Shown here piece by piece: positions 9,501-22,584 of a stretch of 64,000 nucleotides of DNA (within the stretch, counting starts at the first letter, position 1; the number at the start of each line of letters is the position of its first letter). The notes under the pieces are model-generated. The model made no database searches. It was not told where the DNA came from and worked only from the letters and a program-made list of their open reading frames with translations. The position numbers were made by a program, and so were the translations under genes. Origin of the DNA: Phallusia mammillata (Eukaryota); contig OZ281497.1 in NCBI GenBank assembly GCA_965637545.1, forward strand, positions 20,088,001 through 20,152,000, read 5' to 3'.

Positions 9501-11054
9501 GCATAAAATGGAGCGTTCGTTTTTGAACACTGAAAATTAAGAAAAATTGTGATGTTTTTTGTTATATACCAAACACCATAAAATAAGTTTTCCACCAAAC
9601 CTGCGCATTGAAATTTCTGTCATATACTTTGTAATTTGTTCGCAAACTTAAAATCCCAATGTGACACGCCCTTGAGCTCTTCTCGCGTAATTGGAAGCAA
9701 TTTCTCGACGATTCTTAAGCTCTCGACTGACACATCAAAGTGATCCCTTCATCCTACGTAGTTAATAAAAAACGTCGGCAAGTTGTCCAAGCGGACTTTC
9801 CATAGGCCTTTTCGTGGTTATACCTTTTACATACAGCATGCTGGTGCACCAACACCATAATTTTTGCACTAGTCGGCAAGGTTACTGTGTAGTGTGTTGT
9901 TCTGTTTTGTATATTGTCAGTAATAGTGTACAAAATATTAATTCTATTTGTACTTGCTTAGAGCATTTAGGTCCCTTTCCAGAAATATTGGCAAAGTTGT
10001 CAATTCCAATTTAAACGACGACTGGATTTTGTGTCTCCTTATGTTTAACGCAATTGGTTACATAATTAAGTACTAGATTTGCAAGGTAATTTGGTGTCTT
10101 ACACATCTCGTACAAATTGGGTTAGGAGGCGTTCATATTTGACATGTTAATATCACTCAATATTTTCAGGTGTACGAGAAAGCTGTCTTGCTTGTGTGCA
10201 AATGTCACGGGATGTCAGGTTCATGTGCAACTCGAACTTGCTGGCGACGCCAAGCGGATTTCCGAAAGGTGGCAAGGGAACTGAAGAATATTTATTTTGC
10301 GGCAAAACGGGTTTCCAAACCACAGTCCGGAAATAGGAATACTAATCGATATCTTTACTACGGTAAAAACAATTAATAACAATACGATTCAGTCACAAAC
10401 TGTCATCAACCAGTGGTTGCCAAAACAATGGGTCAACTCCAATTGGGAATTTGGATAAATGACTTCGGTTTTCGTCTGTTTCATAAGTCAAAAAATACAC
10501 AAACAATTCTTACTTCAGCGCGTTCGTGCTCTATGGTTGTCATTTTACACCTTCACCATCATAGAGTATAAAATTTTGACAAATAATTTCCATGAGGAAG
10601 CATTCTACTTTTTTTAAACATTGTGGTCACTTCCAAAATGCTTATATTTGAGTGTATTTATTCCAATAATATTACGTCACATTAGTGCCTAGCTAGAAAG
10701 TAAACCCAGTTTGTCGATAATCTGTCGAGTGTTTCTTACCTGCTAAAGCACATTTCGTATATGTTTTCTCCAGGTTCGAAACGTAGACGCAAACTCAACA
10801 AAGGTCAATTGGCATTCACTCGCAAAACACCCAACCTCTGTCAGCGAAGTAACCGTCTCGGAATTACAGGCACACGAGGGCGCTCATGCTCCAACATATC
10901 AGAGGCAGCCTGTCAGCGCTTGTGCTGTGGTAGAGGCTACACTACACACTTGGTCAGGGTTCAAACCAAGTGTGACTGCGAGTTTAGCTGGTGTTGTGAC
11001 GTTACATGTTCGACCTGTGAAAAGCTGCAAGTACTTCGTATTTGTCAGAGGTGA
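6538..11054 (+). CDS. Divergent Wnt-family ligand; the signal-peptide exon was not resolved
   Basis: Exons 6538-6668, 6738-~6852, ~7009-7098, 7215-7438, 7808-7957, 10170-10362 and 10774-11054. Motifs: YCTAEFAHEKWNCS; TKEAAFYYAITRAGIAHSISEAC; LNLHNTNVGRR; CKCHGMSGSCATRTCW (acylation serine present); CQRLCCGRGY; CDCEFSWCCDVTCSTC. Subfamily not assignable by eye. Confidence 0.93.
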
Positions 11055-11772: not shown

Positions 11773-14700
11773 CTAATCAGATGTCAGTTCAACCAAGAGT
11801 GACATAGCGCTTTTCCCGTTTGGCTGCGGCGACGGAGATTTTCGTTTGGACTGCAAATCGGCAAATGTCACTGTTGGCCCATTTTGTCCGTTTCTGTTGC
11901 TCGATTCAACAGAACCTTCTGGAGCGGAAGATATATCTTCAATTACCAACACAGGCTTGATGCTAGCCACGCTTGCTACAGAATCAGGAGTGTTTGATGC
12001 TGGACGCTCTTCCTTCTTTACTGGCTCCGGTTCCGGCTCTGGCGTTGGTTCTCTAATAGGCTCTTCTGGTGGTTTTGTTTCTTCTGGCAAAGGTGAAGGG
12101 GTTTTTGACTTTTGCTCTGCCGGAGAAGGTGGCTTTTCCACCGTTTTCTCTTCTGGCGTACTTGTCTCAGATACTTTATCTTCAACTAGTAGGACTTCTT
12201 CAGGAATTGGAGTTGGAGGTTTCGGCTCCTCTTTCACTGGTTCCGGTTCTGGGTCCTGATGGACCTGTTTTTCTGGTGCGTCAACGGTTGTTTCATTCTC
12301 CTCTTGGATACTTTCTGGTTTTACTTGATCTTCTTCCGTCGCTTCTGTCGGTTCGATTACTTCACTAACAGGAGCAGGGTCCTGGACTACTTCTAAGGGA
12401 GGAGTAACTGGTTTTTCCTCCACAACTTCTGGCTCTATGACAACTTCCTCTACAACGGGGACCAATGGTTCTTCCACTTTTGTTGGCTCTTCCGGAAGTT
12501 TGGAAACATCCTCTGCCACTTTCTCTTCCACAACTTCAGATGTTGTCTCATCGACGACCGGTTCTTCAATTTTCTCCAGAACAACAGGCACTGGGGAATC
12601 TGCCTTAACCTCGGGAGGAGGAATGTGTTCCTCTCTAACTGGAGTTGTTGACAACGTCGCCTGAGTCAGGACCACGTCATCACCTGTTCCACTCTCCCCG
12701 GAAGCACATAACCGGATACCATACACTGTCCCTTCCTCCAAGTTTTTGAACTTGTATTCGTTCAAACCGTTTTTGCACTCTTCAATTCGATCTTGCTTAA
12801 CGATGGTCGCCATTGCTGAAACATCTTCATCTTCATGTTGGTTCCGTAGACGCGTAAGGGTGACGTCAACAGATTTACAGTTGCCCTCCACTCCCCACCA
12901 CGTGACCAGAATACTCTCCTTCGTGATGTCATCAACTGGGATATGCACATTGAGGACATTACCAGGTTCTAAACAATGACAAAAGTGATAATGTCGTTTA
13001 GGACAGTATATCAATAGGGTTAGACTCCGTGGAGTTATCACGTTAGAGGTGTTTTTGCTACGGACTTGGTACCTCTAAAAGTTTAATATGTTTTAGTTTA
13101 GCAGCGGCCACAAAGCAGAAATTTCGTACGACATCCCTGTCATCACCAAAATATGGCAGCAGACTTCGAAACGTCAAGGGTAGAATTACAAACAATTTAA
13201 CCTAACTTTAAAGCATTCCCGTGTAAACGACACTTTTCAAGTCTATTAGTAATCAAACAATTATCCACTCATACAGCGGTCTTCGCCATACAGCGCGACG
13301 GAATATGCTTACTTGTGTGTGCCTCCGCCGTAACAGTTGGCCCTGAGATATGGCGAGAACGGGATGTGACTGACACACGATATCTTGATCCTGGTTGGAG
13401 ATCACTGAACAAATGCTCGGTTTGAGTTTCCTCGACTGTTATAGGCGCTGAACGATCTCCGGTCTCCATTGAATCTACATTCAACACGTAATCTTCAGCG
13501 CCACCTTCTGGTGATGTCCATTTTGCCACGAGTTCGCGTTTGTCACCTGGGTCTAGTTTAAGTCCAGAGATAGCCCCAGGGCCTGTAAATTTAAATGACA
13601 ATATAGTTAACAGGTGAATTTAATGTGAGAGACGAATATGCATGAATAAAGAAACCCAACAAATATAAATTTAGATTGTTTCATTTTCACTACACAAGTT
13701 TTTAATTTGGAAATGCAATACGTTATGAGATGAAATAGGTGTAATGGTGCGTGATATGTCGGTTTTTGACAACTTATGTAAATTGTAACATGTTACCTGT
13801 TTTGTGTTTGCCCCAAACTGGTACACTTTCTATATCGTTGCTTTCTACTGCCACAGCGATCTCATAAACGGTTGAAGGCATCAGATTGCAAAACGTGTAT
13901 TCTGTTGCATCACCTGGGACACTTTTTTCCATGACAGTTCTTCCTGACATGGAAAAATATAAGCAAGTGGTAATTATATCGGGACCGGTCCCAACTAAAG
14001 TTTTTAACAACTTATTGCCGCAAAAGATATGTGCCAGTTGGTGATCAATAACCAGCATGGAGAATTTCGGCTTCTGCTTTCGTGGGGCCGCTTATATTAG
14101 TTTGTCCAGCTAATGTTTATAGCGTCTCCGACTAAACACTGGAAACAAGTGCGGCGTGATTTTACCTTCGGTGACCAAAGTCAGATGAAATGTTTCTACA
14201 CCGCCGCTGGGCCTCGCCCATTTGCAGCTAATTTTGTCCCACGAGCATTTGTCGGACTGAAACAAGACCGATTCTACCGGTAGCGGATCTGCCAATACAA
14301 CAAAAAGGTTAAACCGACACCAGCACATAATTGTATTACCCAAAATAAAGTTGGACATATCATATAAGTAGACAGTTTTATGTACCAGTTAAAAAGGTGT
14401 CGGCAAGTGATGACGATTCCCGTCCGTCTCTCATGGACATAACTTCCACACGATACTTCGTTCCGGGCGTCAGTTTTTCAAGCAAACACTCTGCATCGTA
14501 TAGATCAGCGAGTCTCCAACCTTCCTCCTTTTTGTCATCTCTCCTGCAGCAAGGTAAAAAAGCAAGCGATAACGTATTGAAATCACAAACCCGGTACATC
14601 CGCGCAGAAGTACATGCCTAAGTCGTTGTTTTTACCTTGCGTACACAATATAGGAATCAGTTCTACCGAGAGATGGTTGCCATTTGACTTTCTGGCAATT

Positions 14701-16695
14701 AGAGCCTTGCTCAGGTTTCGGAAATTGCAGCTTTCCAGACATACCGGGCTCTGTAAACATATCTTTTACATTAGTTTTTTGCCATTACACAGCAGCATTT
14801 ATTCAAATACTAGATTACCTGTGATAAACGTGGACACGGCGCGTTTGCTACTTTTGTCTTGCGAGTTTGTGACGATGCCAACCTTGTACGTCGTTCCAGG
14901 GACCAACCCTAAATAATGACAAAAATACCATGTCGAATGTTCGGCTTGGTTTAATTTTACTGAAGAGATAATTCCACCTGTGAACTTGTAGCGTGGTTCT
15001 TTGATCGCAGTGGGGCTGGTGTCACAGCTTGTGCCCTCCTTCGGTGTCAGAAACAAATCATAATCGTCGACGTCGCCGTGTGCCGGTGACCACGTGACTG
15101 TTACTTGCTCAGGGCCAACATCCTTTGCCAAAATATCATGTACCTCGGACGGTACTGTAAATATATTTTGTCATTGCTTTTTATAACGTTTCTTGTTTGC
15201 GTTCGTGCGCAAATGTCTTAATTGTCTTTTTTCAAACGTTTATGGGAGGTGTTATCGATTTGACTTACTTGTGCACTGGCTAAACTTCATTGGTTTGCTC
15301 TTCCTGTTGTTAGATATGCACGTGATTTCAAGGTTATATAGCCTGCCAGGTGTGAGGCCATTGAAGGAATAGTTGGTAGTGGTAAGTTTGCTGAGTACAA
15401 AAGGCGGCCCTAAAAACAAAGATCAAATTAGCATTAAAAGAACCTTCTTTATGGTAAAAATTGTAAACTTTTTACTTGCTGTGTTGTTTGCCTCAGATAA
15501 CTCCAGCCTGTAACTCTCTACATTCCCTTCTGGAACTTTCCACTTAACCGTCATTTCGTACTGCGTGACGTCAATAAATGACACGTCACAAACATGACGT
15601 GGTGCTGTATATTCCAAAATAAGATTATGAAGTCGAAATTAGAGTGTGCCTTTAACTATCAAAACGTTTACCGGTTATTATGCTTCCCGTCAAAGATTCG
15701 CTTGCTACTCCGTTGGCAACGGTTTGCACACTAACAGTGTACTCGGTTCCGGGTACAAGGCCTCCAAACACGTGACTGTTGCCTGTAATGCCAGTCACGT
15801 GAGTTGGTGACGTCACGCCTTCTTCGGGTTTGATGGAAGCCGAGTACGAATCTCGTTTGCCTTTGGAGTGTCGCCACTTTACTTCCAAAGCACTGCTTGT
15901 GGCTTTGGAAGGGAATTGCAAATCTCGAGGTGGTCGAGGAACTAAACATAATTGGCAACTTATAGTAATATATTTATTACTTGAATTTTTAAATTGGTTT
16001 AAATCTGTACGGCTGCTTACGTGTGGATATTTGTGCAGTTGAACATGCTGCCTTCTTCCCATTAGTTTGAATAGCGATCACACCCACAGTATACGAGGTA
16101 CCGGAATGAAGACGATGGAATTTGTATTCCGGGTTAGGAATAGCTCTTATCTGAAATAAATTTTGTGTCAACTTCAACTTTGAAAACAAATTCATTTGAA
16201 AACTATTTTAGAACGTGTCATGGGTTGTCATTTATATTAAGTTGTGTAGAACTTAATTTCTTTGCTAACTTATCTTACCAAAGTTCGAGAACGGATTTTG
16301 TCTGGAGGAAAAATTCGAACTTGGTAAGACTCAACGTTGAGTAATGGTGGAGGAGACCACTTAACTGTGAAGGTTTTGCATTCTATCTCATCAAATTTAA
16401 AGTTTGTTGCACTTTCGTAATCTGTAACATAAGTAAACATATACCACACGGTTTATCTTTCCGTTTTTGTAAGATTAGCGCTTGTGACTATATGAAGCGC
16501 AAGATCTTGTTTAATTGGACCAATTATGTAGCCTAATACAAAGTTGTGCAGTACCTACAACTAATAGAAACGCCGCTCACCAGTTTCGTCGTCAACTTCA
16601 GTCGTTAAAGATGTAAGCGACTCGACCGAAGAAGATGAAACAAACGATAAACCGCTGCGACTTCTTGGTGGCACTTTGCTGGGTGCGCTTCCCAT
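11773..16695 (-). CDS. Predicted intracellular protein: N-terminal MGSAPSK, 8 fibronectin type III repeats, Pro/Glu/Val/Lys-rich tail (roughly 1100 aa)
   Basis: Exon 1 is 16581-16695 (MGSAPSKVPPRSRSGL...). Successive exons encode FN3 modules with W..P and L.PGT.Y motifs, e.g. VKWSPPP/LHSGTSY, VKWRHS/LVPGTEY, VTWSPA/LVPGTTY, AKWTSP/LQPGSRY. The last exon 11773-~12969 has FN3 #8 plus the low-complexity tail, TAG/stop at 11773-11775. Confidence 0.85.
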
Positions 16696-19866: not shown

Positions 19867-21610
19867 ATGTTTATGACAAGATCTGAATATGATCGAGGTG
19901 TGAACACTTTTTCACCTGAAGGAAGAATCTTCCAAGTTGAATATGCTATTGAAGCAATTAAGTTGGGATCCACAGCTATTGGAATCCAAACTTCTGAAGG
20001 AGTTGTGTTAGCAGTTGAAAAAAGAATTACTTCACCTTTAATTGTGGCATCAAGCATTCAAAAAATATTTGAAATTGACACTCATGTCGGTAAGATGTTG
20101 TGTGTATATGGAGGTTTTCTCCAGGACCAGTCTGCAGAGTGTGGCAGCTGCACACACTATTTGTTTTAAACAAAATAAATTTGCACGCTAAGTTTGGAGG
20201 GATGCATGTAAAACTTTGCACCACAGGCATTTAATTGGCCTCTCTTGACCTCTTTTACTTATTTTGAACCTGCTGAAATTGATCTTGCACATGGGACATG
20301 TTGGTCCTGCACGTCTGAGATCTGGTTGGGAACTGCCATGTTCTGCAGACTGGCTCCAAGAATTTTATAACTGGGGAAATGGTGGAACCCTAGTATAGAT
20401 GTATTTTAAATGGGGTACTTTAATCTCTCATTCACTTTATAGGTTGTGCAATGAGTGGTCTGATTGCGGATTCAAAAACCATGATTGACAGAGCAAGAGT
20501 TGAAGCCCAAGTTAGTTTGTTGATTGCATGCTACTTTTCTATTGTGTTGTATATCTTTTATTCTTTTGCTGTGTTTTTTTGCAGAATCATTGGTTTACAT
20601 ATGATGAAAAAATGAGTGTGGAAAGCATAACAAAAGCAGTTTCAAATTTAGCTTTGCAGTTTGGTGAAGAAGACTCAGAACCTGGAGCAATGGTATTTTC
20701 AATGTCTTCTCGATAATTTTGTATGACACACAGAGATTACAATACAATTAAACAAACTTTTAGAGCAGACCATTTGGTGTAGCTTTGTTATTTGCTGGAT
20801 ATGATGAGTGGGGACCACAACTTTATCACCTTGACCCCTCTGGGACATTTGTTAAATGTTTAGCTAAAGCAATTGGTTCAGCATCTGAAGGTGCTCAAAC
20901 CTCACTGGAGGAACAATATCATAAAGTAAGAATACCATCAAACTAGTATTTTAAACTGTAACTAAAATCTTTAGCTATGTGATAGTTTTTACATAATATT
21001 TATTAAACACTGTTCATAAGTTTACATGGATCTGTTCACAGGTTTATTGATGAAAATTACAGCTCAAATAGATGTGAAAAGTGGCATGCTTTATTATTCA
21101 TTTGCCGAAATGTTTGAATAGAAGCATGTCGCTTTTTACATCTAATATGACCCTTATTTTTCACCATTAAGTTTATTATCCATGTTTATGCAACTGAATC
21201 TGGTTGATTGAAAATGCAGTGTGCCAATTTTTTGGTGCACTTAAGCACACAATACGGTTAACCAGTGTGTTTCTGTAAATGATACATATATAAGCTTAGA
21301 AATTATCTACTTCACACAATGAACTAAAATGTGTGATTAACTTAGTTGCAGCAAAAATCCCAAGCATATATTTTTTTCTGTTACTTGATATGATATGTGT
21401 GATTGTGACAGTAAAAAAGTATTCGTAAATTAAATTGTTTTCTAGTCAATTACCCTGAAAGAAGCATGTAAATCTGTGCTTGGAATTTTGAAACAAGTAA
21501 TGGAGGAAAAACTGACATCGACCAACGTTGAAGTTTCGACCATAACAAAAGAGCAGAAATTCCACATGTTTAGTAAAGATGAAGTTGAAGAAGTTATCAA
21601 GGACTTGTAG
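19867..21610 (+). CDS. PSMA5: Proteasome subunit alpha type-5, 5 exons
   Basis: [58 protein letters not shown]; [12 protein letters not shown]; [15 protein letters not shown]...EEVIKDL*, TAG at 21608-21610. Confidence 0.97.
20127..20353. mobile_element. 227-bp MITE with CCAGTCTGCAGA termini (copy 2) in PSMA5 intron 1
   Basis: Same TIRs and homologous interior as 19479-19696. TSD CTCCAGGA / CTCCAAGA (7 of 8 match). Confidence 0.85.
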
Positions 21611-21798: not shown

Positions 21799-22584
21799 AT
21801 GTGTACTGTTGATGAGGAAATCGAAGCCCTTGCAGCTGTTTATTGTGGCGACCGAGAATTTGTTCTGGTTGAATCCCATTCTGGCATTCGACGATTTACA
21901 ATGAATCTACATCTGTCAGATATTGATCAAATTGTGTCGTTTGGTTGCAGTGTCATGGCAACCTATCCCAGTTCTGTTCCACTTGTGGAAGTGTACACGC
22001 CGAAGCTAACGCGAAATCAAGGTTCAAACTTACAATCCGAACTACTGGCACATGTTACAAATGATGGTTTAATGAACCAGCCAATGTTGGATGTTGTAAT
22101 CCTCTGGGTTAAAGAATATTTATCAGATATTTTGTCCAAAACAATAACGCAACACACAGTTTCCGAATTACCGACTCTAAAGCAGCTAACTGTTTTATAC
22201 ACGCTAGATCACATGCGCAGCAAATCTAAGTACACAAAAATATTAACAAGTTGGGCTAACCAGCTTAACGTATGCGGTAGAGTAATATTTTGTAATCGAA
22301 AAATCTTTATTGTCCTACACGGCAAAGAAGAAAGTGTGCGAAAGTTTTTGGTTGATCACAAAACCCAAAACGTAGATGTCAATTCCAGCGGACAACCTTG
22401 TAAGGAAAGGTTGCTGCAGATTCTTGCACAGGAATTCGATAAACAATGTACTTTATCGGACTTTACTTACGTCGAATTTTCGAACACAACAGATTTACAG
22501 ATTGCATTCGCGAATTGGAATTTGACTGACCTTTTCGAGAATTATGTAAAACTTGGTACATATGGACATACTTCTTTAAAATAA
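21799..22584 (+). CDS. RWDD3: RWD domain-containing protein 3 (RSUME), single-exon CDS
   Basis: 261-aa ORF. N-terminal RWD domain (EEIEALAAVY...YPSSVP). C-terminal block LDHMRSKSKYTKILTSWANQL..GRVIF..KIFIVLHG...NVDVNSSGQPCKERLL matches my recollection of vertebrate RWDD3. Confidence 0.88.
   Translation: MCTVDEEIEALAAVYCGDREFVLVESHSGIRRFTMNLHLSDIDQIVSFGCSVMATYPSSVPLVEVYTPKLTRNQGSNLQSELLAHVTNDGLMNQPMLDVVILWVKEYLSDILSKTITQHTVSELPTLKQLTVLYTLDHMRSKSKYTKILTSWANQLNVCGRVIFCNRKIFIVLHGKEESVRKFLVDHKTQNVDVNSSGQPCKERLLQILAQEFDKQCTLSDFTYVEFSNTTDLQIAFANWNLTDLFENYVKLGTYGHTSLK

Follow-up and report, generated by a model that had tools for sequence, protein, structure and literature searches.

An eight-FN3 protein of Phallusia mammillata with a conserved N-terminal peptide that fits the N-myristoylation pattern

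In a 64,000-nucleotide (nt) stretch of the Phallusia mammillata genome (contig OZ281497.1, forward-strand positions 20,088,001 to 20,152,000; hereafter the window), which is animal DNA with short introns, a minus-strand gene running from 16695 to 11773 encodes a protein that opens with MGSAPSK, continues into eight fibronectin type III (FN3) domains and ends in a long acidic disordered tail. At a rough probability of one half, we read its product as a soluble, cytoplasm-facing tether of a tunicate family, which would be held at a membrane through a myristoylated Gly2 and would couple that membrane to a partner. This reading leans on the first 27 residues, which by sequence comparison are conserved better than any other part of the protein in the two other species in which exon 1 was reached. 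A sequence-only reading of the same DNA had described this layout and proposed a membrane-tethered cytoplasmic 'mini-titin'; what it observed is confirmed and what it made of the observation is partly supported, in that the membrane tether appears plausible on sequence grounds and the 'mini-titin' does not.

The N-terminal peptide encoded by exon 1

Exon 1 (16581..16695) holds the start codon and 38 codons and closes on a phase-1 donor (G|gtgagc). The ATG at 16695 opens MGSAPSK (16675-16695), the start that had been read from the letters, and the conserved N-terminal peptide occupies the first 27 codons (16615-16695). The start fits a PROSITE-type pattern for N-myristoyltransferase (NMT), as the sequence-only reading had recognized, with Gly2, a small uncharged residue at position 3, one of S/T/A/G/C/N at position 6 and a residue other than proline at position 7. 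By itself such a match is weak evidence; its conservation among orthologues raises it above chance.

Contigs of other assemblies used in the comparison are labelled spA (L001, L010, L011 and L012), spB (L002 and L003), spC (L004 and L008), spD (L006 and L009), spE (L007) and spF (L005). Exon 1 was located in spB (L003:3841) and spC (L008:18731, minus strand), each with an available phase-1 GT donor, and is read there as MGS.PSKV.P.RSRSGLSFVS.SSV.SL. Phallusia, spB and spC agree at 23 of the first 27 positions, among them M1, G2, S3, P5, S6 and K7, so the conservation of G2 and S6 that had been proposed as a check is found in both orthologues. Between Phallusia and spB, 6 of the 27 codons are identical, 17 differ only synonymously and 4 change the amino acid; the corresponding numbers for spC are 9, 14 and 4. 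The codon of Ser13 alternates between AGT and TCT/TCG among the species. This synonymous excess, together with the AGT/TCT serine switches, indicates selection on the peptide rather than on the DNA, and thus strong purifying selection in this frame. Over the whole exon, identity is 66-74%, as compared with 25-79% for the FN3 exons (most 30-60%). A word search with the exon-1 open reading frame (ORF) gave no match; gene calls in the assemblies pass over ORFs this short.

The conservation of this peptide also bears on the alternative of an unlipidated soluble FN3 scaffold of the cytoplasm or nucleus, in which the peptide would be kept for another role (14-3-3-like docking at RSxS, a degron or N-acetylation), and the tail and C-terminal motifs would bind partners. 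Such a scaffold would account for an invariant stretch that exceeds the need of NMT, extending through residues 11-27 (RSRSGLSFVS.SSV.SL), and it agrees with the permissiveness of the NMT pattern and with a weak basic patch that lacks a palmitoylatable cysteine. The positions that matter most in NMT recognition are G2, S3, S6 and K7. All four are invariant despite saturated synonymous divergence, which argues against this alternative, and we consider the unlipidated scaffold somewhat unlikely.

Upstream of exon 1, the conservation detected by tblastx starts exactly at the ATG, and nothing except exon 1 is conserved in the upstream DNA compared (3.1 kb of the window, 3.8 kb of L003 and 1.4 kb of L008); the upstream signal-peptide exon that the sequence-only reading had named as a refutation does not appear as conserved sequence in this DNA. 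In the window, L003 and L008, the frame is closed by a stop 7, 12 and 10 codons ahead of the ATG, respectively, and in L003 an in-frame stop stands between the candidate splice acceptors and the ATG. Any further upstream exon in the window would have to lie short of 19867, where a divergently transcribed proteasome alpha gene begins. The Kyte-Doolittle 19-residue mean peaks at 1.25 over all exons, and the 8-residue maximum within exon 1 is 0.90; the protein therefore contains neither a transmembrane segment nor a signal-peptide core, in agreement with the sequence-only reading. N-x-S/T sequons number 2-7 per ~700 residues of FN3 sequence in five species, with none positionally conserved, and the cysteines show no consistent pairing. 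These observations weigh lightly against a glycosylated ectodomain. A comparison of sequon density with other multi-FN3 proteins matched in database searches was dropped, those matches being largely bacterial.

These data also weigh on a second alternative, namely a secreted matrix-type FN3 protein whose signal-peptide exon was missed, as an alternative first exon or one lying further upstream, with the MGS exon being 5' untranslated region, part of a minor isoform or a chance ORF. A splice acceptor does lie a few to ~70 nt ahead of the ATG in each species (6 nt in the window), exon 1 joins in phase 1, the usual phase for signal-peptide exons, the FN3 domains match those of fibronectin and tenascin best (see below), and RNA contigs do not cover the 5' end. 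Spliced-leader trans-splicing is common in ascidians, and the acceptors ahead of the ATG would also fit this process. Against a secreted protein stand the strong protein-level selection on exon 1 in this frame, the onset of conservation at the ATG with no other conserved upstream exon by tblastx, the in-frame stop of L003, the absence of conserved glycosylation sequons and an acidic, E-rich tail that is not mucin-like. We therefore regard a missed signal-peptide exon as distinctly improbable.

Gene structure, the FN3 array and the acidic tail

The 14 exons of the gene were placed from open frames, splice consensus and the exons of orthologues, and they give 3204 nt of coding sequence including the stop codon at 11773-11775 (1067 codons, 1067 residues). 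Each of the 13 introns has GT..AG ends, and in most of them the acceptor has a good polypyrimidine tract; the phases all match and the exon bodies are free of stops. Phase 1 is found in 10 of the 13 introns, including every inter-domain boundary and the junction between exon 1 and exon 2. The stretch was compared with one DNA run (X1), which is near-identical, and with three runs presumed to be RNA. In the presumed RNA run X4, a 203-nt contig joins 14504-14386 to 14288-14205 and skips exactly the predicted 97-nt GT..AG intron between FN3-5 and FN3-6 (14289..14385), indicating that the gene is transcribed and, at that junction, spliced as modelled. Run X1 contains the whole stretch with 4 differences and is possibly the source of the assembly, so that it provides no independent support; the stretch is absent from every run recorded as RNA. 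A pseudogene or chance ORF was rejected, since the frame is intact in several species, is under purifying selection and is represented by spliced RNA.

Homology searches and structure predictions used individual exons as queries. Pfam fn3 matches fall on exon pieces of all eight domains, in line with the eight repeats counted in the sequence-only reading, and, counted from the N-terminus, the eight FN3 beads form a rod. Four matches clear the gathering score individually, namely FN3-2 (E 6e-12), FN3-4 (1.8e-8), FN3-7 (8.6e-9) and the first half of FN3-3 (1.7e-6). Halves split by an intron score 16-21 bits each, covering complementary stretches of the profile. In FN3-5 and FN3-6 the first half has no Pfam match and was recognized from its W..P.G..Y pattern and its colinear counterparts in orthologues.

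FN3-1 (16021..16421; exons 16421-16279 and 16150-16021) is defined by the two fn3 halves, by orthologous exons in L003, L008 and L009 and by splice sites. FN3-2 (15672..15941) lies on one exon flanked on either side by phase-1 introns, and its best match in the PDB is fibronectin. Pfam, orthologous exons and splice sites define both FN3-3 (15269..15604; exons 15604-15476 and 15409-15269) and FN3-4 (14819..15154; exons 15154-14978 and 14908-14819). Because the 69-nt intron of FN3-4 (14909-14977, minus strand) is in frame and free of stops, the complete domain reads through as a single ORF; retention of this intron would add 23 residues and leave the frame intact. FN3-5 (14386..14750; exons 14750-14636 and 14543-14386) is supported by orthologous exons, Pfam and the RNA contig over 14386-14504, and FN3-6 (13797..14288; exons 14288-14166 and 13943-13797) by Pfam, the RNA contig, orthologous exons and splice sites. 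FN3-7 (13313..13582) is again a single exon, with tenascin-R as its best PDB match. FN3-8 (12655..12968) opens the last exon and is identified by Pfam, by the family signature WWGVEG, and by AlphaFold2 and Foldseek. AlphaFold2, run on the last exon with a 10-sequence alignment, models FN3-8 with block means of the predicted local distance difference test of 80-96 and one loop at 66.

The sequence type of the array is extracellular. Searches of PDB sequences with the FN3 domains returned fibronectin and tenascin, along with FN3 domains engineered from these two, and no titin, and Foldseek with the FN3-8 model returned generic FN3 domains led by tenascin, Tie2 and fibronectin, with a titin FN3 ranked 49th. 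Among the Pfam matches on exon pieces there is no I-set or other immunoglobulin family, no kinase and no phosphatase; the sole 'Ig-like' models matched are ILCR1 and phage protein J, both sub-threshold and on the second half of FN3-1. The sequence-only reading had named orthology to a receptor-phosphatase ectodomain gene as a possible objection. Such kinship is not indicated: Pfam models of Dep-1 (PTPRJ) Fn3 domains match weakly, all below their gathering cut-offs, and the last exon ends in a stop with no protein tyrosine phosphatase match in Pfam.

After FN3-8, the last exon encodes an acidic disordered tail of 231 residues (11962..12654) and a conserved C-terminal block of 62 residues (11773..11961). 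The earlier description of about 300 residues dominated by P, E, V and K holds for the presence of such a stretch and fails on its extent, as the rich segment stops at 231 residues and a distinct block follows. The tail is 23% E, 20% P, 15% V and 8% K (66% P/E/V/K together), carries a net charge of -42, and contains no aromatic residue and no cysteine. Tandem Repeats Finder detected no real repeat in it, and AlphaFold2 models it at low confidence (block means 34-64). In orthologues, the share of P/E/V/K is only 42-46%; what is conserved is the length class, the acidity (net charge -34 to -42), the disorder and two C-terminal motifs, not the P/E/V/K richness.

Every complete last exon of the family has the WWGVEG signature together with an acidic tail 220-430 residues long, an IKPVLVI-type motif and the C-terminus L(A/T)LTS(S/T)D. 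The IKPVLVI-type motif forms a hydrophobic beta-type core in the block (11776-11961, minus strand; also in P0002, P0005, P0007, P0009 and P0011). The acidic residues and serines that come after it in Phallusia give it a resemblance to SUMO-interaction-type motifs, and it matches no known motif. The extreme C-terminus L(A/T)LTS(S/T)D is near-invariant in the same five proteins; in Phallusia the block ends ...LTSD, with a predicted terminal helix that AlphaFold2 renders as short and of low confidence (residues 387-395 of the last exon).

Taken at face value, an FN3 array followed by a 66% P/E/V/K tail in Phallusia would suit a muscle-type elastic protein akin to titin, as the sequence-only reading had it. 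The absence of immunoglobulin and kinase domains in Pfam, FN3 domains of the fibronectin/tenascin type, which find no titin in the PDB sequence search and a titin FN3 only at rank 49 by fold, a tail without tandem PEVK repeats and a composition that drops to 42-46% in orthologues refute titin kinship, and we give an elastic 'mini-titin' next to no credence.

Orthologues and genomic neighbourhood

Orthologues with the same exon order are present in at least four other assemblies, most likely of ascidians. Colinear orthologous exons extend from FN3-1 to FN3-8 in spB, spC and spD, from FN3-3 to FN3-8 in spA, and from FN3-5 to FN3-8 in spE. The spD locus ends ~1 kb upstream of FN3-1, and the 10-kb flank of spE reaches only FN3-5. 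In spA, FN3-1, FN3-2 and exon 1 are all missing from contigs L001, L010 and L011, which stop 1.3-3.3 kb upstream of FN3-3, and L012 begins only at FN3-4. L001, L010 and L011 are three independent metagenome contigs that break alike upstream of FN3-3; the breaks may reflect an assembly-breaking repeat or a different 5' end in spA. In this upstream region L010 carries a 278-residue minus-strand ORF (866-1702) with no Pfam match.

A word search with the last exon matched two proteins, P0001 and P0002. When an FN3-8 profile was compared with 1.84 billion representatives, full-length matches in a single stretch were confined to nine or ten proteins of 118-553 residues, which are last-exon ORFs of unannotated assemblies. 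P0013 is UniRef100_H2XQ14, a 118-residue fragment from Ciona intestinalis that was automatically named 'Fibronectin type-III domain-containing protein'; it scores 88.8 bits against the family profile and is an orthologue of FN3-8 and the start of the tail. The weaker matches are generic multi-FN3 proteins, many of them bacterial. Among the best 150 matches there is no full-length annotated relative, and none of the 700-1400-residue matches carries the N-terminus, tail or C-terminal end of the family; a vertebrate-like 700-residue protein with a full-length FN3-8 match is likewise absent from the profile search. A literature search (myristoylated FN3 proteins, Phallusia FN3, the accessions and H2XQ14) returned no paper on the gene. 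On these sequence matches the family is uncharacterized and so far seen only in tunicates, and the earlier remark that no described family with this layout was recognized agrees with both searches.

One further candidate, P0098 on the 9.8-kb Logan contig L013, was set aside as too divergent to place. Its FN3-8-like last exon is divergent and reads WGVEG instead of WWGVEG, and L013 shows no C-terminal motif and no recognizable upstream FN3 exons.

In the window, a Wnt gene converges on the FN3 gene (last exon 10761-11054, plus strand, Pfam wnt E 7e-26; earlier exons from ~7215), with the two stop codons ~720 nt apart, and a convergent Wnt also lies downstream in spA (L001 and L012). On the other side, a gene for a proteasome alpha-type subunit diverges from the FN3 gene (first exon 19867-20169, plus strand), with the start codons ~3.2 kb apart. 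An intron-less ORF of 261 residues with an RWD domain (Pfam E 1e-9) is found at 21799-22584 on the plus strand.

A putative lipid-anchored tether and its relation to known systems

We propose the following model for the product of the gene. The initiator methionine would be removed and NMT would myristoylate Gly2 co-translationally, after which the lipid and three basic residues (K7, R11 and R13) would attach the N-terminus weakly to the inner side of a membrane. The invariant serine cluster RSRSGLSFVS.SS, with an arginine at -3, may act as a phosphorylation switch on membrane binding, as in Src and MARCKS. The C-terminal motifs would bind a partner, making the protein a long membrane-to-partner tether or spacer. 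Because the array is of the extracellular fibronectin/tenascin sequence type, the family probably arose from an extracellular FN3 array that lost its signal-peptide exon and gained an exon carrying the lipid motif; the FN3 type together with the phase-1 exon design points to descent from such an array. The fuller version of this model, in which a tunicate-specific family moved an extracellular-type FN3 array to the cytoplasmic face of the membrane by an exon swap and built a rod-plus-bristle, lipid-anchored tether whose C-terminal motifs couple membrane to partner, is put forward more tentatively.

Several points weigh against the proposed tether. Its myristoylation is predicted from a loose pattern and from conservation, and outside Phallusia exon 1 could be located in spB and spC only, and not in spA, spD, spE or Ciona. 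None of the three presumed RNA runs covers the 5' end of the gene, the sole RNA contig being that of exons 10-11. The second membrane signal is weak, amounting to three basic residues with no nearby cysteine for palmitate. The FN3 domains resemble the extracellular type, with fibronectin and tenascin as best matches, and both the partner and the membrane are hypothetical.

If the protein is lipidated, it would clearly exemplify how an FN3 array of the matrix type can be turned in nature to intracellular use as a lipid-anchored tether, the change of a single exon flipping the topology of all its domains. Ascidian embryology would gain a cortical protein that is lineage-specific and tractable, since the embryos of Phallusia and Ciona are transparent and easily electroporated. 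If it is unlipidated, it still represents an uncharacterized conserved tunicate gene with an unusually constrained N-terminal peptide of 27 residues.

Among known systems, the Ciona entry UniRef100_H2XQ14 is fragmentary and automatically annotated, and displays no N-terminus, architecture or function. With titin, twitchin and obscurin, the Phallusia protein shares a plausible intracellular array of tandem FN3 domains without signal peptide and a P/E/V/K-rich disordered segment. It differs from the titin family in having no immunoglobulin or kinase domain and in FN3 domains closest to those of fibronectin and tenascin. Furthermore, its tail contains no PPAK or poly-E repeats and is not conserved in composition, and the whole protein has 1067 residues, rather than megadaltons of mass, and an N-terminal lipid motif. 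The R3 receptor tyrosine phosphatases (PTPRJ/DEP-1 and PTPRB), by their ectodomains, and secreted FNDC7-type proteins resemble it in their approximately eight FN3 domains of the fibronectin/tenascin type, whereas the Phallusia protein has no signal peptide, transmembrane segment or phosphatase domain.

FNDC3A and FNDC3B have nine FN3 domains and a C-terminal transmembrane anchor, and lack an acidic tail. They would share with a lipidated Phallusia protein a long FN3 array that is tethered to a membrane at one end and has no enzymatic domain; the FNDC3 anchor is a C-terminal transmembrane segment, whereas the candidate anchor in Phallusia is an N-terminal lipid, and the acidic tail is found only in the latter. 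At the N-terminus, the MGSxxSK start recalls the MGSNKSK of Src, with basic residues and a basophilic-kinase-type serine site adjoining it, and the long acidic disordered region recalls MARCKS and BASP1. Unlike these three proteins, the Phallusia protein has eight FN3 domains between the putative anchor and the disordered region, and it lacks both a kinase and the MARCKS effector domain. What it has in common with Src, MARCKS and BASP1 would be design, not descent.

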